DNA of 64,000 nt from Mytilus trossulus (GCF_036588685.1 NC_086374.1:100502001-100566000), one strand, 5' to 3'; positions 1-63,854 are shown, numbered from the stretch's first letter. Numbers and translations are program-made. The notes: a model not told the origin generated them from the sequence alone.

Positions 1-477
1 CCATAAACACACCATTATTCTTTTGTAATTAGGACGGTAACAGAACCCAATCATATTTCAATTCCGTCAGACAAGGCCTTAGCTTGTATCTATTTATCAC
101 TTATATAAATTTACTCAGTGCAAAGAAAGATCTCTTTGACTTAATCCATGTATTTACAGAAAAACAGATTGAAAAATATCTTTGACAGAATTTTTGAAAA
201 ATTTCTAAATAATGGGATATGTAGAGATAAGTGCCTTTGATGTTGTTATTAGACTTTTTAAACAAATTACAGTGATAGTGAACACCTTCTTTCTCACTTA
301 CCCAAATATTTACAACGCTCCGTTGAATTAATTTAGAATAAGTTTCACTAAGCTATTTGTTTATATAATCAACATAATTTAAAAATATAAACAGGCGTTC
401 AATTCATCTATGCAACGAAAACCGAGGAACTGCTTTACGCAGCGGAGGAAATCCAGACTCGAAGCTGTGAAGAATTA

Positions 478-536
478 GGGTCACCAGAGGTCAAAACCGT
501 TGAAATGTGATTGGTTGAGTATTAAATGTGTCAGTT
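478..536 (+). promoter_or_regulatory. Putative Lox2 proximal promoter: DR4 (GGGTCA-ccag-AGGTCA 478-493), inverted CCAAT (ATTGG 510-514), initiator TCAGTT (531-536)
   Basis: Motifs read directly, 75-130 bp upstream of the first ATG. TCAGTT matches the protostome Inr TCAKTY. Confidence 0.55.
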
Positions 537-609
537 ATCTGTTGAAAGGGCTACAGGGTCCCTGAGACATCTCAAACAAATTTCTGGAACTGAAATAATA
601 TTTTCGTAG

Positions 610-1102
610 ATGGTGTCCTCACAACAAAACACTGTGGACGGCTCTCACACTTACAAACATTTTGGAATGAGCTCGTATTTGCCCTTACGACATACGGCGT
701 CGACGAGAGGTGATGATTTACATGGTACAACAGAAAATTCATCATACATGGATCATTTTTTGAACATCCCCGATATTTGTCCAACAGGGGCTGATTATAG
801 GTCCCAACGGTACTATATGGGATATAACCAGGCCGAAGCATGTCGTATGGAGGCTCTACAACGGACTCATGATCTCAGCCAAAGAATGGGTATGCACGCG
901 GGACGTCCATCGTTTTATCCCAATATGAGTGTTTCTGGGAATTTACGTTATAGGGAAACTTGTCCGGAAAATATTCCTACAAGTAATAATATAAATAATG
1001 GAACCAGTAAAGATCCAATTAGTCCGCTGACACCAGGGACCCCATCTGGAAATGAGGATGGTGAGCCACCACCACCGTTCTATCCGTGGATGTCAATTGT
1101 AG
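610..1102 (+). CDS. Lox2: Hox gene Lox2, coding exon 1 (N-terminal MSSY motif, hexapeptide FYPWM)
   Basis: The ORF 610-1107 contains MSSYL (ATG at 667, the typical Hox N-terminus) and PPPPFYPWMSIV. The donor G|GTTAGT at 1102/1103 is phase 1 and joins exon 2 in frame (G+GA = Gly). The start could be 610 (261 aa) or 667 (242 aa). Confidence 0.93.
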
Positions 1103-4100
1103 GTTAGTAGCCTTGTTTTATTTCATTTTACAAATAAAATACACATAAAACTAATGATTGGGCAGTAAACATGGATATATGACCCCTCATCTGGGAGATT
1201 GTTTGTCCAATATAGTTATAAAAATTGAGATAGAAACTTATTAATACAAATGTCAAAATGTATTATTTATTAGTGTCCGGAAAATAATAATAAAGATTTC
1301 TTAACCACAGAACATCAATTTTATCTTGCGGCATTTTTTAGATAAATTTTTCTAGTGCATAGTGATTTAAGGATAAACATGTATTTATTTTTACGATATG
1401 TTTACGTCCTTAAATTTATTGCTTGTATTTGATATTGAAAATTTTCTCTATTTTATTACAAAATTTATTACTAAGTAACGCTAGGTTTCAGATATCAAAT
1501 TCATTTCTGTTTGACATTTAGAACTTGTTCTATAAGCACAAGCATTTTCTTTTGCCATAACATTTTCTTTTTATTTCTTTTGCCCTCAGAAACCCTCAGA
1601 TACTCGGCAATAAAAATGCAATACAGGCATTAAATCAACGAACACTGTTGGTTTTATAGTTTTCAGAAATTTGTTCTCGTTTACAAGATAAAATTGTTTC
1701 TTGCTATTTTTCTACTTTTAAAAATACTAAAAAATAAACAATGAAACAAATTAGGTGAATATATTCTTTAAAATTTATTTTTTTGTAAATAAAGGTGGTG
1801 AAAAATGTAAATTGAAAATTACTGACTGTAGAAATTTCCCCTTAAATCATTTTGTAAATTGAGCAATGTTTCAGGGCAATAAAATATATGATCACTATGA
1901 ATATTTAATAGAAATTGTACCCGCATGTAACAAAAATAGCAATTAATTGTTGAAAATGGCGAGAATGATCAACTTAAGTGTTGTATCATCATTTCAACAA
2001 ATTTTAAAATTCAAATTTAATAATAAAGACATTTTAATGACAGAAATTACAAACGACGCTTCATTGTTAAACGTGTACTGCCTGTTAACCGAGAACTTCA
2101 CAATGAGTAACAAAAACATATAAAAATGAAATAAATTTCAAAATTCATTTTAGACAAAATAACCTAGTACAACTGAACAAGTTCTTTTACTGTAACTAGT
2201 GAATAACATTGCAAGTGAAGTATGGTACTAAATATTTCATGACGTCTCATGCGAATTTTTCTCTTGTAAAAAAATGACAAAGATTATTTTTTTGTTTTTC
2301 TGCTGTAATCATATAACAATAATTACATCTGATAACGACCAAAATGATTCAGCTTTTCACTCTCGAGTTGTTTCCCTTTTATTGTATTTTTTACCAGTTA
2401 TAACATTTGAACATCAACTTTTTTTGGCGAATTGCCTGATCAAAATAAAGATAAAATCACACGAAAAGTTAAAATTAAAAACAATTAACGCCTGTATTAA
2501 ATTATAAAGTTTAAAAGGTAAAATATGTGACCCTTTGAAATTAGAACATTGAACAAGATCGTTGTTTAAGCAACACTATTTAGGTTTAGTAAATATAGGC
2601 TAAAAGATATTTCAGTCAGACAAAAAAGTAACAAAAAATCGCCGAGGTTTGAGAAGTTGAGTCTAGACAGATAGCTATGGATTAATTCATTTTGTGATGT
2701 AAAAGTTTAACTGCATATTTTTGAGATTAAAATGTTTAATTGCCATTACACTGCTCACAGTCAAATATCTTTCATCAAAAGCGAACTTTCTGCAAAATTT
2801 TTAACAGGAATCCAATGATCATTGAAGTTCTTTGTATAAAACAGTGACTCAAAAGTTATAAATGAAACATTGAAAGAAGGAAAAACATTTAGTTTATTCA
2901 ACACTCTTTAGAAAAAAATATTTTTAAATTTAATAAATATCTATTGATTGATTGTTGGTTGCTTTACGCCGCATTATCACAAAAAAGGCTATATATCTAT
3001 ATTAGTTCATTAAGGCTACCTATAGGATAAAAAGGATTATTTTTTCCCCTTCAAATTAAAGCATAAAAATTGTCTCAAGTTTTCAAAATTAGTTTGTTGT
3101 GTATATGTAAAAAAAAATCAAGATTTTAAATTATCCTTACACAAAATATCAATTAGATCTTATTCACCCTTTTACAAGTTATTATGGTCATTGTCAAGAA
3201 ATACAAAATATCATTCAAATAATTTTTGAACTTGAAAAAACCACAAAGAAAATATTGTTGAAAGTTTGAATAGGGTTATACAAACGTGATAATCCGTGAC
3301 GTATTATGGCTGTCCAACAAAATGAGAAAATAATCAACTGTTTAATAGGTAGTGCTGTATAAATCTCAAAGATCCACAACCAAAACTATTAAATACTCAT
3401 TATTCCTGACAGGATTTGATGGCGGATCAAACTAATTCATAAAAATACGAACCATCATTAAACACAATTATATTAATGTCAGATCACAATAAATTTATTT
3501 GTATTATTTAATAGCTGCTTCGTGATACCTCAAAAAGGATTTTGGGTATGTTTGTTTTTTGTTCCTGAAGTTGAGCACTTTGTTGATAGCCCGATGATTT
3601 GTTTCAGTTCAATTGGAAAACAAAAATATTTATTTGTTATAAGTCAGCCTCTAGTCAAGCTCTATAAAATTAATTTGCAAATATATGAACATTAAATTTT
3701 TTATGTTTTTTTTTAATTTAAGATATTGTACAAAATATATGGAAAATATAAAGAGACAGTTAATCGTTAAAAGATTAAAAGAAGTTGAAATGAATAAATA
3801 TTCTAGATTTGTGTGTGTCATAGGGTTGCTGTCACTGACATATACCCTGTACTCTTTTATTTTTACATGTTTAAAATTGCCCATTGATACTTAGGTATGT
3901 GAAAACATAACTCTAACGTGAAATACTTATACTAAATTAGATTTATAAATTTCTATAACTCATTACAAAATATATTGCGAATTCATTTTAAAAGAAAATA
4001 CAAATATATGTAACCGAAGAGTATTTTTATTTATAAGCTTTTCTTCATTTTGGGGAACAAGGTTGGTTAAATCATTTTGTAAACACAAAACTAAACCAAT

Positions 4101-23009: not shown

Positions 23010-23166
23010 TTTTGGCTCATTTTGGAATTTTGGGTCCTCAATGCTCTTCTACTTTGTATTTGTTTGGCTTTTTAACTATTTTGATCTGAGCGTCACTGAT
23101 GAGTCTTATGTAGACGAAACGCGCGTCTGGCGTATAAAATTATAATCCTGGTACTTTTGATAACTA
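23010..23166 (+). mobile_element. 157-bp hammerhead-bearing Penelope-derived insertion with 6-bp TSD, nested in another repeat
   Basis: TTGAAA is duplicated at 23004-23009 and 23167-23172. The host repeat (gctttgctcattgttgaa|gccgtacggtgacc) resumes after the insert. Confidence 0.8.
23090..23133 (+). ncRNA. Minimal type I hammerhead ribozyme (Penelope-like-element type), intact core
   Basis: GCGUCA-CUGAUGA-GUCU(uaugu)AGAC-GAAAC-GCGC-GUC^-UGGCGU. Stem I 6 bp, stem II 4 bp, palindromic ACGCGCGU stem/loop III. Predicted cleavage after 23127. Confidence 0.88.
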
Positions 23167-33949: not shown

Positions 33950-35130
33950 AAGATAACAGTAGTATACCGCTGTTTAAAAGTCACAAATCGATTTAGAGAA
34001 AACAAATCCGGGTTATAAACTAATATCGAGGGAAACACATCAATTATAGGAGGAAAAATAAAGGCAACAGTAGTATACCGCTGTTCAATCTCATAAATCC
34101 ATGGACAAAAAACAAAATCGGGGTAACAAACTAAAACCGAGGGAAACGCATTAAACATAAGAGGAGAACAATGACACAACACTGAAATGTAACACGCACA
34201 GAAAAGGACCAAACATCAGACAAAATCCCACGAGAATAACAAATATAACATCAAAACCAAATACATGAATTTGGGATAGACAAGTACCGTGACACGTCTT
34301 ATCGCAATGTGAATTTACACTCAAAAATAAGAGAAAACAAACGACGCAACGTTAAAATGTAACACACACAGAAACGAACAATAATATAACAATGGCCATA
34401 TTCCTGACTTGGTACAGGACATTTTTAAAGGAAAAAATGATAGGGTTGAACCTGGTTTTGTGGCATGCCAAACCTCGCACTTTAATGGCAATGTTAAATA
34501 TAACATTGAAATGACAACATAATATAACAGGACTACAATACAAATAAATAGGAGAACATATTAGACTAAGAAACACATGATTAATAGATAACAAAAAGCA
34601 TCAGGTTTAAAATGCAATACGCCAAAAACGCGCCTCGTCCACACAAGACTAGACGACACAAGACGCCCAGATAAAAATGATCGAAAGTGAAAAAAGTTCA
34701 CAATTGTACAGCACTGAAGATCAAAAGTTGAAAAAGGTTGTGTCAAAAACGGCTATGTTTTTATGCTTGGGATAAGAACAGCCTTATTATTTAGAACAAT
34801 TAATGCTATTGCAAACAGTAAATTTTATCAAATGAATATAAAACAGATATACATAAAGAAACTGAAGTATTAACTAATTTCAGAAAACTAAAACGAAAAC
34901 ATAATGCTAAGACCAACACAGAATAGACACACCCGACACAGTCCAGGCTTCAACGCAATAAATCATAAACATGACGTCACATACGATGGCGGAAAGGCAC
35001 AACAAATACGTCAAATTTGAATTTATGAAATTTCTGAAACAGCATAAAAATGACGTCACAGATGAAAAACTATGATTTAAAAGTAAGATGGAATTAGGAT
35101 AGATTTAAGATTATATTAGAACTAAATAAT
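33950..35130 (-). mobile_element. Composite dispersed repeat (family 4) with duplicated terminus; related copies 32780-33000 and 45235-45398 (opposite orientation)
   Basis: The terminus aaaggcaacagtagtataccgctgttc...aaatcgggg..acaaactaaaaccgagggaaac recurs. The element contains a twister-like fold and a decayed hammerhead. Confidence 0.75.
34390..34493 (-). ncRNA. Twister-like fold, family 4
   Basis: Minus strand: GCCAU(P5)..GUGC-GA-GGU-UUGGCAUGCCA-CAAAACCAGGUU-CAA-CCCU..AUUUUU..AAAAAU-GU-CCUG-U-ACC-AA-GU-CAGG-AAU-AUGGC(P5). P2 and T2 are imperfect. Confidence 0.5.
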
Positions 35131-36149: not shown

Positions 36150-38042
36150 TAATATCAAATTAGTTAAGAAAGCCAAACAAGTATGATGTTAAACAGCATC
36201 ATATACCCAATATTTAAAAAAGTGTGTTATTGACACGTTTAATGGTATCGACTGTTTGGTATTTGTTAACAAAAAAACGACATCAATATTGAAGAAACAT
36301 CTACAGTAAGGATAAAGTAAAAACACAAAAAAACTGAACTCCGAGGAAAAGTACGAATGGATAACAACTGTCATATTCTTGACTTGGTACAGGCATTTTC
36401 TAATGTAGAAAATGGTGGATTGAACCTGGTTTCGATATTACCTAAAAACAAATGATTTATAAATTAATAATAAAAGAACATAAATATATGAACGTTCACA
36501 AAAAGTTACTAACTACAGCAAAACGAAATCTTGAACATATAGATATAAATTTCTATTTTAAAAAAAATCGTTTTTTCTCTTGCCTGTCTGATTCAATGCT
36601 CTTCAACGTCATAATTTATTTAGCCTTGATTTTTTTTTCGAGCTTCACGGATGAGTCTTTTGTAGACAAAACACGCGTTAGACATTCGAAATTTTAAGTC
36701 GTGTATCTTTGATAGGTGAACTCACCGATACAGTATGTTACATTCAGCAAGGAAGGCACACAATTGCCCTTACCTATATAAACATTATTTAAACGTATCA
36801 TCATGTAGCATTGCCAGTTGTTTGAAATTGATGACATTTTGTATCTGGCGAACAGCGATAATATGTAAAGGCTATGTTATTTCGAACTTACACCGCATCC
36901 TCCCATAGACTAACTAAGTTTTTAATCCTGCTCTCAGATTTTCTACCCCCATGCATAGATGGACGTAGCAAAAGTAAAATAACAAAATAACAAACACCAA
37001 GAAAATTCAAATATGAAAGCCACTTATTAAATGTCAAAATATAGAGCTCAATCACATCAACCGAATGGAAAATATCTGTCATATTTCTGTCTTGGAACAT
37101 ATATTTTCTTATGATGAAAACAGTTGATTAGACCTGTATTTATAGCTAGCTTAACGTCTCACTTGTATTGGTGTCGCATTGAATTCCTTTATACTGTCAA
37201 GAATGTGTGAGCAAAATAATCCAGACAGAATAGTTAAAAATGTTAAATATAGGGCAATATTGTGTTATAATTTTAAACACCGTAAAACAACCCTATGTCA
37301 GAAAAGAAAAAAAACAAAAGTTCAAATAGATAAAACATATGAGCAAAAATGAATCAGAAGAAAACAAAAAACTACCACAACGCAACTTATTGGTGGAATG
37401 AATAAGTACCGATCATCGCCTAAATGATGTTACCAAAAATGGACAAACAATAAGCAAGACAGACACTTTTTTATACACTTACTTTGCAGTGTTACTCATC
37501 TACTGATTTAAACATTTCTAAGAAGTATTACGTAGATGGAACGAACCTTTTTACGTGCTAAATAATACGACTGGTGTTTGGACGATTTTTGGTACGGAGG
37601 ACGTTAAAACGTCAAACATATATTGGAAATATCTAGTGGCAATTAGATGAGTCTTGGCTTTTATAATGATAAATGGGAGTACATATATAACTTTATCATT
37701 TGAATCAGGAATTTACTCTTATAACTGGAACTCTTTGAGAGGACATTTCAATGTCACTTGGTCAAAGCATCATCGATGAATTCAATTTAAATATGGTTTT
37801 TGGAGAAGATATCTTAAACCATTAACCTTACTTTTGATGGAAGAGACAATCAGTATTGACATAATCTACGGAAATTTAGGATATTAAAAAACTTTTCCGG
37901 GTTTGTTTTCACTCATATCTTATAATATGGTTAGTTTTCTCGTTTTCTTGTTTGAATATTTTTACATTGTCATATCGGTGTCTTTTATAGCAAACTCTGC
38001 GGTATGGGCTTTTCTCATTGTTGAAGGCCATACGGCGACCTA

Positions 38043-40632: not shown

Positions 40633-41759
40633 ATAGCGCCGTTTTTTGCTATGATAAATCTTACATAACAGAATAATCATTTTATTTGGGATTTTACCTA
40701 TTGAGTCCTATTTCAAATTATGACGTTTGACTGTGTTTGGATTAAATCAAGAAGCGTACCATATTGACACAACCTGTCTTGCTTCTTTTGAAGTTCATGT
40801 TATTCCCTGAATCTGTTTCATTGATTTTCTGTTTTAATATATTTTTAAAAAAGAGACTGAACATCGGTTCACTACTGTTAATGAGGAATTTGATGCGACT
40901 GTCATACAAAAGAAGTTTAACTATCTATAAAACCAGGTTTAATACACCATTTTCTACATAGAAGAAAATGTTTGTATCAAGTCAGGAATATACAATTGTT
41001 ATCCATTTATTTGATGTGTTTGAGCTTTTCGTTTTGCCATTTGGTTAGAGCCTTTCTGTTTTGAATTTTTAAAATTTTTATTGGTTTCATTAGCGCAGTC
41101 TTTAGATTTCCATGAAGTTATTTGTAGCATTTTGTTTGACCTTCGTCGTACTCCACATTTTGTCATGTCATTATCTGCTTTTGCTTGTCCCTGAGTATCT
41201 TTCTTGGTAACAAAAATACATTTAGTGAAGCTATTTACGTCACTCTTGACGATATCTGTGTACGGATTAGAATTTTGGAGGATGAAAGATCACAGCTAAA
41301 TAACTTTATCTGTATTCCATATTAAAAACATCACAAGAACTTTTCAAATATTTAAGCCTGAAACTATCAAACTAAAACCGTCTCTCTAGATGCAAAAAAA
41401 ATATCGAGCACTATAATAATCAGAAACTAGAGACTAATTGGTCAGATCCTACGGAGAGAGAAAAATGACGATACTCCATTTGACCAAAGAAGGTAAACGA
41501 ACGGAAGGAATGTCTAGAATAGCACGGAGACGAACTGTAGAGGCAGAAGTAATGGCAGCATCAACGAACATCGGGCATTCTAAATAAAATTACTAACAAC
41601 CGACAAAAGAAGAAGGAAAGTAATTAAGACAATTGTGTTGTTCTCTATTTCAATGGTCGCACTAATTTTCCTTACATGCCTGAGGCAATAATGTAGGTGT
41701 AATTTCAGAATACATCATCACAGGTTATTTTGGTTGTAATCGGTATGATGGTGATTGAG

Positions 41760-52285: not shown

Positions 52286-53955
52286 TTTCAATACTCCCAA
52301 AAAACTTACAAGGGAATATGAACAAACGGAGAAATCCTAACTTTATAGACACCAAATAATAGAAACTCCTGAAATCTAATTTATTTCATTTTTTAGTAAA
52401 AGTTCAATGTTAAAAAGCCAATCGTGTTAAATAGAGGGGTTGGTATATAAATTTAGTAATATACAATTATATAGTCGTAATTTATGAGTAGATTAAGACA
52501 CCTTAACTGGTGTACTTTACTAAGAATCTATAAAACACTAACTTACGACATGTCTGGAAGAACTACTTAGGTCCAATATATGTCCTAAATGGTCTTAGGA
52601 CATGTCCTTATCATAAAAAGTGCTTCGATATTAATAACACTAATAATTATTGTTTATAATTTTCAGTAGTTGTTTTTACCTGTTCACATCGACATTATTC
52701 TGAATCGTCTGAAAAACTAATGAACAGTTCTGAATTGACTGCAAGCGAATAATCTGAATAAAACCTAGTTTACTGCAGTAGATAGCCTTCATAAACTCAT
52801 CATATATACCAGGATTAAAGTGTATGCTCTTTCCGACTACAAAAGACTCATTAATGACGCAAAATTGAATAGGCAAAGGCCACATAAAGAGCGAATTCTC
52901 GAATTTGAAGAGCATTTAGGAACCGAATAGGTTTTGTTTAATACAGCTAATGTAATATATATCTGGGGGTAAAAAAAAAATAATAAGAATTTAGAAAATT
53001 GTCTGGAATACTGAAGATGACTGAAAAATGTATTGATAACCTTTCCAGATGTTGAAGATAAAAATTACCGTTTAAATCAAAATTGGTTTACTAGTGTAAT
53101 GATTGAATTCAAACGTTGTTTTCGTTTTGTCTTCGCACTTACAGTTGATGCAAAAAAAGACAGATATATAGAAAATGAAATCAAAAGGACAGTAATATAA
53201 AATAGCCAGTGGTTGAGGTACTTAGAACATTCCTTGTCCAAAAGGGAAAAAAAAAATATAACATAAGTAAACAAAAAAATGTATTTAAACTAAGAAGTGG
53301 TGAAATGTACCGAAGGGACATTTAAACTTATAAGTCGAAATTAAAACTGACTACATGGCAAAATTAAAACAAAATCAACAATACACACAGCAGTTTACAA
53401 AACACAACCTGGATCTCTCTCTCCCTCTCTCTCTCTCTTGTGTCTCGTTCACTCTCCTTTCCTCTTTTTCTTCGTCTTCCATCGTGTTACGATCACTTGT
53501 ATCGTCCACTTACCTTATTATTGAGATCATTCACAATATCCCTTTTACGCCTACACACAACTTTGTTCGCTCACTCTCTCATTTGTTCGTCCCCTTCTTT
53601 ACATACTCTCGTTTATATGGACTAAAACTCGGTCGCTCACCATCTCCCTCGATAAACACGTATTCACCTCTCCTAGTGAATTCTCAATTCACTTCCCTGT
53701 AAATCATGTTAATCCTACCATGTGTCTTTCAGGGTAATGATTCGGTCCCAATACTTAAAATGATTCAATCCTTTATGGGTGGAATTTACATAGCTATATA
53801 ATTCGTACAATAAAATTAAGCAATAAATGAGGTTTTTAAATTTTAGTGCTACTTTGTTACAGTTGTTTGTTTTTATAGTAATGAAGAGGATTTTTTTAGA
53901 TGTGTACCTGTTGTGTCTTTGTTTTGGTCACGCATCGTTGTCAATTAAAGTTGAT

Positions 53956-54047
53956 GCGACTTTCATACAAGTGAGAGGTTTAGCTAGCTATAAAACCAGG
54001 TTTAATCAACCATTTACTACATTAGAAAATGTCTGTACCAAGTCAGG
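53956..54047 (+). ncRNA. Twister-like fold, family 3; T1 ACC/GGU, T2 AC/GU; P5 3' strand decayed
   Basis: GUGA-GA-GGU-UUAGCUAGCUA-UAAAACCAGGUU-UAA-UCA-AC-C...G-UCUG-U-ACC-AA-GU-CAGG. Confidence 0.55.
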
Positions 54048-57000
54048 ATTAAGGAATTTGATATCCATTCGTTTGATGTTTTTGAGCTTTTGAATTTTCC
54101 ATTTGATTAGAGACTTTCCGTTTTTAATTTTCCTCTACTTCTTGTTTTCTAATCCCACGGTTAATTGCGGTTTGTATTAGGAATACCAATATCCCCATTC
54201 GGCAGTGAAGGACCCTGCTAAATAAGAATTCTGTTTGATTTTATGGGATGTATCATTGTTTTAAAAAGACTGTCTTTTGTTTTGTTTCATTTTTAGGTTA
54301 TTGTCTAATTGATATATACGGTACATTTCTTTAAGAAATAGCTAATTGCAAAACACGTCTAAATTCCATAGGTATAAGAAGATGTGATTGAGTGCCAATG
54401 AGACAACTAATTATCCAAGACACAATGTTGTAAAATTGTGAACAATTATAAGTCAAAGTGCGGCCTTCGATCACATTAAAGAATAGACGCAAAAACATCT
54501 GATTAATTTCGGATCAACTGTTTTGTTGCGACATATCTTACTCTCTACACATTACGATTTTTTTCTGAAAATGGCAGTAAGAATTGTTAATCTGACTTTT
54601 ATTGCATCCTTTTAGACCCTACAAACTCTTATACATTGTGTACATGATAATTAAGAAACTATTTGCTAAATGTGTCACAAACAGCATATGTAAGAGAAAA
54701 AAGGGGCGAAAATACCAGAGGGACAGTCAAACTCAAAGATCGACAGCAAACTGACAGCGCCAAGGCTAAAAATAAAACAGACAAATAAAAGTACATATGA
54801 CACAACATAGAAAATTAAAGACTAAGCAACACAAATCCAACCAAAATCTTGTGGTGATCTCAGGTGTTCTGAAAGGGTGAGCAGATCCTGCTCCACCTAT
54901 GGCATCCGTCGTGTAGCGCATATCAAATGCAATTTGTCGTTATAAATTATGAACTAGGGATATCCTGTTATTGCCGAATGGTTTAGGCAACAACGTTTTT
55001 TAAAGAGTTTGCCCAAGATGTAAAAAGTCGGGCGTAAAAGACAATTATAGCCTCCTCGTTGATATTCAACGAATCATTGGGTTAAAACGACTTTTTTTGG
55101 GTTAAACGAAACATTAATTGACATTTTTTGCTACAGGTGCATCCAAGATTTCACTTAATTTGACTAATTACAGTAAGACAATACTTGCTTTAAAAAATGC
55201 TTACTATTCCAGAGTATGTCCTAGTGTACTAAGTTTTATGAATGTCCTGTGTTTTAGTTATTTGTATTGAATTAGTTTGTATTAAAAGTCAACTAACTAG
55301 TGTTAGTACTATTGAACAGATATAAGGGTTATCTCTCCTTGACATAAAATCAGTACAAAAGCAGTACTTGCACAGCCAAAAACACACATAAAAGCAAAGG
55401 AATACGTCTTTTTTTTCCTAGTATATGTGGCCTTCAAAATGGAACAAAAATACATCTTAAATCAATGCCACTTTAATATGGCCCTTAGCACCGGTTTGAG
55501 CGGAATTCTTTGCAAAATAATTTTGTTTAATCTGTGAAATCTTGCAAAGCCATATCATGCCCGTCAATAAAATCATACTGGAAATCGGTACATATTTCAA
55601 ACAAAATAGGTGTAAAAATTAAACCAAGTAGAACAAATTTTGGCTATAAGACATCTTCAGAAAAGACATTTATCAAGTATGAAAACACGTATGGAAAAGA
55701 AGGTTCAATGAAGGTGATACATTTGAAATACATATCAAATATAAGAGATTGTTTGTTTTTAATTAATAACAGGTTAAACCATTATATGTCTCATTATACT
55801 TAAGACTATATTTTATAAGAGTCATTATGCTCGAAGAAAGAAAGCTTTTATATTATCAACTTTGTAACGAAAAAGACATAAGACTTATGGTGAAGAGGTT
55901 GTCATCTCAGACAGCAAGTCGAACATAAGACTTCATAAGAGATAATGGCTGAAACATAGAAAGGCAAATGACTTTTTCTATCACTTTTTATACTGTCAAA
56001 CTCAATGAATTGATGTTGTACCTCTAGTATAATGTCTCCCTCCACTTCTCAAAGCATATTGTTTCTATTCTGTCCTCTTGACCCTGAAATGCAGAAACTT
56101 AACCTCTTAAAATATAACAGTCAATTTCACTAATGCATCCAATGTGACAAAGGAATATCTTTTAACATGAAATAATTGGTGCAACATTTCTTAATTAAGC
56201 TTTGTTAAACACCTCTTGAAGACTACGTAGTGACTCACATGCTTTCATTACGCGACTCCTCAGTAACTTTCGGAAATCGAAAAAATTCAATAAATTTGAT
56301 CCCTGTAGAGTCATAAATCTCTAAGACGTATCCGGAATTTAATCAACATGAATAGCATCAGAAACTTGCTTTTCTTTGATGTCAGTATTGATATAGCTCG
56401 TATAAATCACCAGTACGGAAACTATTGCAATCCACCCGATCAAATAACGATTACGTTGTAGTATTTACACGATAGAACGTAGCTAATCTAGGCTGGATTT
56501 GTAAAGGTCTGCACATATATATAACCTTGAAGTAAGGAACATTTAAGCAGGATTTGTCGATTTTACCTGATTTTAATATAGATGGTAGCGGGGATCATGT
56601 TTTTATCTAAATTGAATGTGTTTCATGATTTAAAAAAACCTTAAACGGAATGAATGAAATTAATTAATGATTTGGGAACTTTAAAGACAATACTTAGAAA
56701 AGACAGACGACATGTCATATGTAATTAATACATATAATTGTATATACACGAACTCAGATTAGATCAAGATAACAGAAAAAAATAAATGTAGTCCGGTATT
56801 TTTTACCGTCACACAGAAGTAACAGAAATAATTTCACATCACAAATAAAAATGGCAGAGTTGTCATTATCAATCTACAACGAAAAATCAATGTCAATGGC
56901 AGTTTAATTCAGATATCTGAATTGTGTGTACATAAAAATTGTACAAATCGGATTGTTACTTCCTCATTGTAACTCAAAAATAATTAAGCGTATATACAAA

Positions 57001-58888: not shown

Positions 58889-59040
58889 GTTTGGTAAAAA
58901 TTGTAATTCAAAGGCACTATTGCTATACAGAGTCGATTGATGATTTTGATCATGTTGACCTGACGTAATTTAGCTGATTATTCTATATGTTTCAGAGAGA
59001 AAACTAAAGTTTCTGCACAAAAGTCATTTAACAATCTTCA

Positions 59041-59117
59041 TACATACAGAATGTGGCGGGGCTAAATATGTTAGCCGGATCTCAACCCTCTCCCTTACCT
59101 GGGGCAGTGGTGTAACA
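59041..59117 (-). repeat. Fragment of family-2 repeat with 5' half of twister-like fold
   Basis: Minus strand: CCACUGCCCCAGG-UAA-GGGA-GA-GGG-UUGAGAUCCGG..AACAUAUU-UAG-CCCC-GC-C-ACAUUCUGU. The P4 half is missing. Confidence 0.55.
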
Positions 59118-61774: not shown

Positions 61775-62345
61775 AAAAGTAAAATCACAAAAATACTGAA
61801 CTCAGAGGAAAATCAATTTGGAAAGTCCATAATCACATGGCAAAATCAAAAAACAAAACGCATCAAAAACGAATGGACAAGAACTGTCATATTCCTGACT
61901 TGGTACAGGCATTTTCAAATGTAGAAAATGGTGGATTAAACCTGGTTCTATAGCGCTAACCCTCTCACTTTAATAACAGTCTCATCAAATTCCGTTACAT
62001 TTACATGATGCGTTAAATAAACAGTCACAATCAATAAAATAGTCAAAATATGGGAACATCAGTCATCATCGTATAACATTTTAACAGGACACAACAACAT
62101 CTACTATCTACGAACACTTGGATTGATTCGAGTGTCTGACGTCAGAAAAATTATATACGTCACATAAATTTGTCGTTCAATGTGCATACAATAGTTATCA
62201 AAAGTACCTGGATTATAAACAATTTTAAATTTTACATAGGCAATGAGCGCAGACAGGGTTAAAAAATCAAAAGTATGTAAGAATAAATTACAGAAATCAA
62301 ACTAGTCCAAAAGTTATACATAGAATTTATGAGAATCCAAAACTT
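61775..62345 (-). mobile_element. Abundant dispersed repeat family 3 (best copy); other copies at ~21355-21430, 35310-35455, 36315-36432, 36970-37400, 40885-41070, 44275-44385, 47020-47245, 53945-54135
   Basis: Shared block aaaagtaaaatcacaaaaatactgaactc...aactgtcatattcctgacttggtacaggcattttc...aatggtggattaaacctgg, seen repeatedly in both orientations. Confidence 0.85.
61882..61981 (-). ncRNA. Twister-like fold, family 3 (with P3 and P5)
   Basis: Minus strand: GACUGUUAU(P5)..GUGA-GA-GGG-UUAGCGCUA..AACCAGGUU-UAA-UCC-AC-C-AUUUUC..GAAAAU(P3)-G-CCUG-U-ACC-AA-GU-CAGG-AAU-AUGACAGUU(P5). Confidence 0.6.
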
Positions 62346-63524: not shown

Positions 63525-63854
63525 TCAATAAAATTCGAAAGGAAATTGGGAATGTGTCAAAGCGACAACAACCCGACAATAGAGCAGACAACAACCGAAG
63601 GCCACCAATGGGTCTTAAATGTAGTGAGAAAATCCCGCACCCGGAAGCCTCTTTCAGCTGGCCCCTTAAAATATGTATACTAGTTCAGTGATAATGGACG
63701 TCATACTACACTCCGAATTATACACCAGAAACTAACATTAAAAATCTTACAAGACTAACAAAGTCCAGAGGCTCCTGACTTGGGACAGGCGAAAAAATTG
63801 CGACGAGGTTACACATGTTTATGAGATCTCAACCCTCCCCCTATACCTCTAGCC
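63525..63854 (-). mobile_element. Dispersed SINE-like repeat (family 1) carrying the twister-like fold
   Basis: A related tail (gtcgggttgttgtctctttga...cccatttctattctcaat) also occurs at ~7030-7090 in the opposite orientation. Confidence 0.65.
63763..63854 (-). ncRNA. Twister-like ribozyme fold, P5-type permutation (family 1)
   Basis: Minus strand: GGCUAGAGG(P5)-UAUA-GGGG(P2)-GA-GGG(T1)-UUGAGAUCUCAUAAACAUGUG-U^AA-CCUC(P2)-GU(T2)-C...G-CCUG(P4)-U-CCC(T1)-AA-GU(T2)-CAGG(P4)-AG-CCUCUGGAC(P5). This maps residue for residue onto the twister core UAA-P2-GCC...GCCGGUCCCAAGCCCGG...GGAGGG. Confidence 0.7.

Follow-up and report, generated by a model that had tools for sequence, protein, structure and literature searches.

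A putative P5-closed twister-type ribozyme motif in the 3′ untranslated region of a Naiad-type Penelope-like element of Mytilus trossulus

The window, i.e. the whole stretch of DNA analyzed here, comprises 64,000 nt of one strand of the Mytilus trossulus genome (GCF_036588685.1, NC_086374.1:100502001-100566000), and positions are counted from its first nucleotide. Near its end, the minus strand reads like a twister ribozyme whose chain is opened at the P5 helix. This locus raises the question of whether the resemblance reflects a real ribozyme fold, to what kind of repeat it belongs, and whether RNA is cleaved there. An earlier note, made from the sequence alone, had taken the ribozyme to be the core of a SINE-like repeat and the repeats to be ribozyme-processed retroelements.

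Layout of the motif and its copies in the window

The minus strand of 63854-63763, as read from the sequence, displays all the listed twister elements in order, with P5 and P5′ at its ends. The elements, their coordinates and the P5-type architecture are as the earlier note had described them, and its placement of the cut between 63811 and 63810 is correct. The features, all on the minus strand, are as follows.

63763..63854, minus: whole twister-type motif from P5 to P5′, 92 bases; covariance model (CM) R1 96.3 bits
63846..63854, minus: P5 5′ strand, GGCTAGAGG / GGCUAGAGG; pairs with 63763-63771 with one mismatch, the consensus being a perfect 9 bp
63845-63842, minus: junction TATA (UAUA) between P5 and P2′
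63838..63841, minus: P2′ (P2 3′ strand), GGGG; pairs with 63805-63808 CCUC, with one G.U here
63833..63837, minus: L1, GAGGG; G63837 corresponds to the conserved catalytic G
GGG 63835-63833 with CCC 63784-63782, minus: predicted pseudoknot T1, L1 to P4 loop
63823..63830, minus: palindrome 1, GAGATCTC / GAGAUCUC; occupies the expected start of the P1 hairpin
63811..63820, minus: palindrome 2, AAACATGTGT / AAACAUGUGU; adjoins the cut, broken here, consensus AAACAUGUUU
63811/63810, minus: predicted scissile bond U63811/A63810, following the 21-nt linker after L1
63810-63809, minus: AA after the cut, followed by the P2 5′ strand
63808-63805, minus: P2 5′ strand, CCTC (CCUC), opposite GGGG 63841-63838
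63804-63803, minus: GT (GU), 5′ half of predicted pseudoknot T2; partner GU 63779-63778
63790..63802, minus: P3 mini-hairpin, one mismatch here; consensus CGCA-auuu-UGCG
63789-63786, minus: P4, CCTG (CCUG); partner P4′ CAGG 63777-63774
63785-63778, minus: P4 loop, TCCCAAGT / UCCCAAGU, closed by P4 (63774..63789)
63773-63772, minus: AG between P4′ and the P5 3′ strand
63763..63771, minus: P5 3′ strand, CCTCTGGAC / CCUCUGGAC, one mismatch; consensus CCUCUGGCC

In the proposed fold the long P5 would clamp the two halves of the motif, giving a P5-closed (type-P5) arrangement. P2, P3 and P4 would form as in known twisters and the P4 loop would make both pseudoknots, i.e. T1 with the GGG of GAGGG and T2 with the GC after P2. 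The scissile U/A would follow the linker.

The window copy differs from the consensus by three C-to-T changes that leave wobble pairs and by two mismatches, and is thus a fossil. T2 consists of two wobble pairs here, and the earlier note had rightly called it weakened in this copy. With its 5′ truncation at P5 and several substitutions, the window copy is not expected to have an effect on the host.

Other copies of the motif in the window belong to a diverged family, termed C, and to a family A′; the window copy itself is of family A.

61883..61980, minus: diverged family C motif in a repeat of about 240 bp; R1 39.1 bits, E 2.6e-8
59009..59111, minus: partial family A′ copy; 5′ half of the motif kept, 3′ half replaced
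53953..54065, plus: family C copy with palindrome AGCUAGCU; R1 17.8 bits, E 0.052 (weak)
40895..40999, plus: decayed family C copy; R1 16.5 bits, E 0.13 (weak)
36364..36455, minus: family C copy without the 5′ half of the motif; R1 16 bits, E 0.18 (weak)
34388..34495, minus: family C copy with palindrome GGCAUGCC; a closely similar motif lies upstream of a Naiad reverse transcriptase on metagenome contig L111

The host repeat

The repeat that carries the motif is a family A copy consisting of 3′ UTR and tail.

63527..63854, minus: tail copy of about 328 bp; identity with other copies about 90%

Its boundaries are sharp against 29 other copies, and on the 5′ side it is cut short precisely where P5 begins. 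A search of the genome with the tail gave 7039 first-look candidates, the best 40 of which are about 90% identical. In most copies the similarity runs on upstream of GGCU, and a stepwise walk gave upstream shared lengths of 660, 975, 1155 and >1900 bp with scattered 5′ ends, which is the pattern of a 5′-truncating retroelement. A tRNA-like or SINE-head reading of the 5′ end of the repeat was dropped, as copies continue upstream.

Other family A copies reach 0.3 to >1.9 kb further 5′ and into an open reading frame with the reverse transcriptase (RT) motifs LPKLHKK, GIPMGTNCAPL and RYLDDIL. Searching the genome with the RT protein gave 47,845 first-look candidates, many with a 480 aa open frame, and pairs of RT matches are spaced 4016-4032 bp apart. 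The RT scores only 14.2 bits with Pfam RVT_1, which is below threshold, and has 3235 database homologues at E<=1e-10. The frame crosses an upstream TGA into a piece that displays a CxC motif and PADKAANNIIIV, and this TGA falls eight codons past DKA; at L061:2944-4005 (minus) the two motifs read MSCNCSN and PADKAANN. DKA (in place of DKG) and CxC are the diagnostics of Naiads, and selenoprotein Naiads of clams and spiders have a Sec codon 8 codons after DKA (Craig et al. 2021, PMC8557442).

A marine-metagenome contig of unit length (L063) has an RT piece that is identical to family A. Its open reading frame extends from position 381 to 3503, with a TAA stop at 3503 and the motif at 3823, and includes four in-frame TGA codons (660, 753, 786 and 2061). 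An N-terminal GIY...YVGET motif is present, and the translation reads SIIYLLT-(TGA)-NKPGCGIQYVGETGRYLSKRTQEH upstream of CxC and the RT. The contig repeats itself with a period of 4032 bp, the tail end being joined to the 5′ region. The Naiad ORF ends about 100 aa past the RT core and is without a C-terminal endonuclease. Within the element some 320 nt separate the stop codon from the motif, and about 240 nt lie between the motif and the 3′ end. SECIS_1-like hairpins lie between stop and motif in this genome and in six metagenome contigs, with 23-32 bits against a gathering threshold of 35. Pfam finds no GIY-YIG domain in the split ORF pieces, and recognizes neither the endonuclease nor the RT at its thresholds; Naiad membership therefore rests on motifs.

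The continuation into the RT ORF, CxC and DKA, the TGA codons, the GIY motif and the SECIS-like hairpin together identify the repeat as the putative 3′ UTR and tail of a selenoprotein-coding Naiad-type Penelope-like element of about 4.0 kb, and not as a SINE. The element shares with described Naiads the N-terminal GIY-YIG, CxC, DKA, the C-terminal RT, a length of about 4 kb and a head-to-tail arrangement; it also shares in-frame UGA codons 8 codons after DKA and before GIY, at positions of conserved Naiad cysteines, and a SECIS-like hairpin after the stop (PMC8557442).

The TGA codons of the Naiad ORF are located before the GIY motif, inside the GIY-YIG hairpin, near a CH..C pattern and 8 codons after DKA. 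Reading frames of a selenoprotein-coding transposon of this kind in a mussel-like genome are found at L063:381-3503, L057:1171-2610 and L061:2944-4005 (minus).

Distribution of the motif was also analyzed in 80 marine-metagenome contigs, which were picked by RT homology alone (RT identity 36-100%) and searched with a CM built solely from copies of this genome. The CM matches 33 of the 80 contigs, always on the RT strand. In 31 of these 33 the match is downstream of the RT, 65-928 nt past the RT match with a median of 350. In the other two (L092:48-158 and L111:272-378) the motif precedes the RT match by about 2.1-2.3 kb on the same strand, which fits the upstream pseudo-LTR of a partial tandem. 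Where at least 700 nt follow the RT (33 contigs), the motif is present in 19; neither CM nor descriptor finds it in the remaining 14, most of which have an RT identity of 37-46% and which may represent other clades or loss of the motif.

These observations bear on the proposal of the earlier note that the ribozyme is the core of SINE-like repeats. Such non-autonomous, abundant repeats would have their RNA processed like that of RTE-type elements with 5′ twisters. Twisters at the 5′ ends of RTE-type elements, which the note had mentioned, are indeed documented (PMC7761336, PMC8501958). The family C copies of the window have a length of about 240 bp, and 7 of 7 aligned copies start about 10 nt before P5. 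However, other copies of the window repeat extend into the Naiad RT ORF, and family C-type motifs adjoin Naiad RTs on contigs L117 and L111. The cut of a P5-closed motif would moreover be internal, and 5′ processing would strip half of the ribozyme from the product, unlike the situation in RTE or R2; nor do the loose ends of the RNA-seq run described below (X24) include copies that start at the cut site. A SINE-like origin of the repeat is thus quite improbable, and what the note took for such a unit appears to be the 5′-truncated 3′ UTR and tail of an autonomous Naiad element of about 4 kb. The processing logic of RTE 5′ ends is not directly transferable to it, because the motif is in the 3′ region, about 320 nt after the stop.

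Some further features of family A copies were observed. Truncation exactly at the first P5 base occurs in 2 of about 30 sampled copies (window 63854 and L004:1501), and the 7 aligned family C copies start about 10 nt before theirs. Reverse transcription may tend to end at the base of the long P5 helix, or a sub-element may begin there. Several young copies have internal deletions in the motif (L054:9283-9366, L055:714-799 and L058:2924-3018), with loss of P2 to P3, of the P4 loop, or of all that follows P3; the same deletion is seen at two or three loci and these copies may be recurrent subfamilies. Type I hammerhead motifs are found near family A copies at L013:1211-1254 (+), L005:391-433 (+) and L006:1355-1398 (+), with 37.2, 32.7 and 23.8 bits respectively (gathering threshold 34); they sit in other repeats that adjoin the family A copies. 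In a tblastn search, the initial 28-60 residues of the ORF piece from L061 match these hammerhead spots on the opposite strand and also window positions 23022-23105. In its 5′ part the L061 copy may thus contain an unrelated, hammerhead-bearing insert.

Comparative support for the fold

Low-stringency searches of 335 kb of sequence gave diverged families of the motif. Family A′ has a P5 and a P3 that differ from those of family A. Family B displays GAAGG with loop UCCUAAGU and a P2 of UCCC/GGGA. Family C, with five copies within the window, displays GAGGU with loop UACCAAGU (ACC) and a new 9-bp P5. In these families the core is kept and the helices are changed in a compensating manner. An alignment of families A, A′ and B (A1) has 92.8% of its cells paired versus 35-47% when the partner is slid, with 8 pairs altered on both sides, pairing counts that are somewhat inflated as the structures were drawn from the same sequences.

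A broader comparison took in 23 lineages, some of this genome and some of marine-metagenome contigs, parsed by a fixed descriptor comprising 13 pairs with a register fixed by conserved letters. Family C is absent from this count; it needs a bulge or a 3-bp P2 and has no 4-bp P2 in register. In the 23 lineages 92.6% of cells are paired, while shuffled partners average 74% and never exceed 80% (0 of 2000 reach the observed value), figures to be read with the relatedness of the sequences and the descriptor's choice of the best register in mind. Compensatory change is seen in 9 of the 13 fixed-register pairs, distributed over P2, P4, T1 (positions 1 and 3) and T2 (position 1). The P2 pair that adjoins L1 and the cut is GC, AU, CG, UA or UG, and P2 position 20-59 is mismatched throughout one clade. 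P4 position 1 is CG, GC or AU and position 3 is UA, AU or CG. T1 position 1 is GC or AU, and position 3 is GC, AU or UG, with U.U in 7 lineages; family C, outside the counted set, has a U-A version of T1 (loop ACC with GAGGU). T2 position 1 is GU, GC, AU, UG or CG.

The window copy and the 23 lineages carry the core letters, i.e. N/AA before P2, GC after P2, the loop UCCCAAG and GAGGG, the limited variation in them being mutually compensating. No variation is seen in any of the 23 parsed lineages at the AA that follows the cut or at the GA within GAGGG, in part because the descriptor demanded these letters. P5 is an uninterrupted helix of 4-21 bp in 23 of 23 lineages, with unrelated sequences, and mismatched flanks taken from other lineages average 4.1 bp. 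P3 in other lineages is 4-10 bp or longer and likewise of unrelated sequence. Among the metagenome variants P5 reaches 17-21 bp, P4 is ACCG/CGGU or GCAG/CUGC, P2 is ACAC/GUGU or GCCC/GGGC, and where the P4 loop is UUCCAAGG or UUCUAAGU, L1 and the GC that follows P2 have changed to match. We conclude from these comparisons that the twister fold with both pseudoknots is real and has been maintained by selection in master copies.

Scores with curated models are low. A scan of 1 kb around the window copy with Rfam at E<=10 gave no match. In a scan of 161 nt, Twister-P5 (RF02684) is the best Rfam family for the window copy, with 14.5 bits and E 0.63 against a gathering threshold of 37.6, and the alignment leaves out the P1 part of the model. 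The same family is best for a consensus-like copy, with 23.4 bits and E 0.0033 against the same threshold. Consensus-like copies, with P2 CCCC/GGGG, T2 GCC, P3 CGCA/UGCG and a perfect 9-bp P5, are cleaner twisters than the window copy. The top score of a whole-genome RF02684 scan is 24.9 bits (E 2.6) among the candidates scored, so that the window copy, at 14.5 bits, is indistinguishable from chance by score alone. Metagenome relatives have 23-24 bits with twister-P1 (RF03160) versus a gathering threshold of 67.2. In none of the scans (window copy, genome, metagenome relatives) does a twister reach the curated threshold. Two of the checks that the earlier note had named for its reading were borne out: a match to the Rfam model, below gathering, and covariation across family copies in P2, P4, T1 and T2.

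The low scores would suit a chance resemblance to a twister in a GC-rich patch of the repeat, given that the window copy has just 14.5 bits and that chance alone should yield scores of 23-25 bits in a 1.3-Gb genome. Such an accident would nevertheless have to produce compensatory change in 9 of 13 core pairs, P3 and P5 helices that are conserved with unrelated sequences, and strand- and position-specific matches on 33 independently chosen contigs, and is hardly credible. The stretch in the window is probably the fossil of a twister-class ribozyme motif from the 3′ UTR of Naiad-type Penelope-like elements.

The missing P1 stem, cleavage and relation to known ribozymes

A canonical P1 is not present in the window copy or in consensus-like copies, where no complementarity was found between the bases after GAGGG and those before U/AA. 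Instead, a perfect palindrome of 8-10 nt is located in the linker 0-3 nt after L1 in 23 of 23 lineages. It is represented by about 16 different words, e.g. GAGAUCUC, GGGCGCCC, GCAGCUGC, GUAGCGCUAC and GGCAUGCC. Most lineages display a second self-complementary element with a 3′ arm that ends at the cut, such as AAACAUGUUU, AAACCGGUUU and AAGUC-A-GACUU. The self-complementarity spans the center of each palindrome, which a hairpin would not need and which points to pairing of two molecules or two units. In cofold predictions, which ignore pseudoknots, homodimers are 6.7-16.5 kcal/mol better than two monomers. This modeling suggests the hypothesis that, with palindromes in place of P1, two RNA copies or tandem units pair as a dimer. 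The two self-complementary words would then replace P1, and the paired copies or units would build the helix adjacent to the cut. Twisters without a P1 stem still cleave, inefficiently (PMC8501958), and small hammerheads of Penelope-like elements are reported to have palindromic loops and to cleave as dimers (as cited in PMC6765202).

With respect to cleavage in RNA, one raw RNA-seq run (X24) was mapped to a young copy at L060:2300-3300, in which the predicted cut is at 2972/2973. Depth is flat over the predicted cut, with values of 246/129, 251/112 and 247/126 in three flanking bins. In X24 at L060 no position has a fifth or more of the molecules starting or ending, and there are no loose ends at the cut. 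The reads come from both strands about equally, include subfamily variants, and stem from thousands of copies, many of them dead; the near equality of strands and the subfamily variants indicate that much of the signal is read-through of many copies. Efficient in vivo cleavage at the predicted site is not supported by X24, and neither is the view of the earlier note that the repeats are ribozyme-processed. Partial cleavage of sense RNA from intact copies is compatible with the data. Canonical Penelope-like elements have reverse-transcribed RNA that is intact at the hammerhead site; here as well, genomic copies are colinear across the predicted cut, and the RNA that was reverse transcribed was therefore uncut at the site.

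Two further observations were made with X24. At L060:2966-2999 five reads with three start points join 2999 back to 2966 with a 34-nt joint, which lies inside the motif just 3′ of the predicted cut and not at the cut itself; it may reflect either template switching or a short duplication carried by some copy. At L060:2878-3047 the plus strand first-mate direction is about twice the other (about 250 vs 120), while the two are equal elsewhere, and this excess begins near a 5′-truncated expressed copy with loose ends at 2915.

The fold may have been kept for a purpose other than cleavage, i.e. as a structured element of the 3′ UTR such as an RT binding site or a signal for RNA dimerization or packaging around the palindromes. 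Several results accord with a non-cleaving element: the X24 reads without ends at the predicted cut, the palindromes where P1 is missing, genomic copies that always continue through the cut site, scores that are without exception below the Rfam gathering threshold, and the P2 position 20-59 mismatch across a clade. On the other hand, letters of a catalytic rather than helical role (AA behind the cut, GA in GAGGG) are invariant in 23 lineages, which is partly imposed by the descriptor; compensatory change keeps both of the twister-specific pseudoknots; and loss of P1 does not abolish cleavage in twisters, although it makes it inefficient (PMC8501958). On balance we regard a non-cleaving element as rather unlikely.

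The most likely role of the motif would be to let head-to-tail or read-through transcripts cleave themselves within the pseudo-LTR region, as has been proposed for the hammerhead in canonical Penelope-like elements. Naiads may, as a tentative and somewhat doubtful proposal, carry a P5-closed twister where their relatives have a hammerhead, with P1 exchanged for palindromes and with activity only as paired copies. Two unrelated ribozyme classes would then serve the same step of the life cycle under the same dimer control.

Comparison with known systems places the motif as follows. The twister class (Rfam CL00120; RF02684) has in common with it the letters U/AA, GC after P2, the loop UCCCAAG(U/C) and GAGGG, as well as helices P2, P3 and P4, the P5 closure and pseudoknots T1 and T2. 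Unlike members of that class, the putative Naiad twister lacks the P1 next to the cut and has two palindromes instead, its P5 is up to 21 bp long, and its scores are below gathering.

In Schistosoma mansoni, the Perere-3 (RTE) non-LTR retrotransposons bear twister variants at their 5′ end (Liu et al. 2021, PMC8501958), and truncated twisters of RTE elements have also been mentioned (de la Pena 2020, PMC7761336). The domain syntax of the S. mansoni twisters (Table 1 of PMC8501958) is almost identical to that of the Naiad motif, including UUGG/UUGA after GAGGG, and both are embedded in an abundant lophotrochozoan retroelement. A P1 that is weak or supplied from outside the element is a further point of resemblance. 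[quoted passage not shown]

The hammerheads of canonical Penelope-like elements and animal retrozymes (Cervera and de la Pena 2014; Lunse et al. 2017; as cited in PMC6765202) are of a different ribozyme class. They occur in the same element order and in the same place, i.e. the 3′ region or pseudo-LTR of tandem units, and they too join a helix that is too short alone to a palindromic word, by which the hammerheads work as dimers. In Naiads no canonical hammerhead was found, and it was suggested that Naiads multiply without such a ribozyme and that the hammerheads are possibly mere parasites of these elements (Craig et al. 2021, PMC8557442). [quoted passage not shown] In the literature searched, with incomplete coverage, no paper ties a twister to Penelope-like elements, Naiads, molluscs or bivalves.

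Penelope-like elements are among the commonest repeats of bivalves and many other invertebrates. If Naiads have a twister in the same place, self-cleaving RNA would be a near-constant feature of the order. This would argue for a real function, and a comparison or exchange of the two classes would make the question testable. A further consequence would be a natural twister without P1, possibly dependent on dimerization. The link between twisters and retroelements would widen from RTE-type LINEs to a second, unrelated order of retroelements. For annotation, thousands of short mussel repeats listed as "unknown" could be assigned as Naiad tails.
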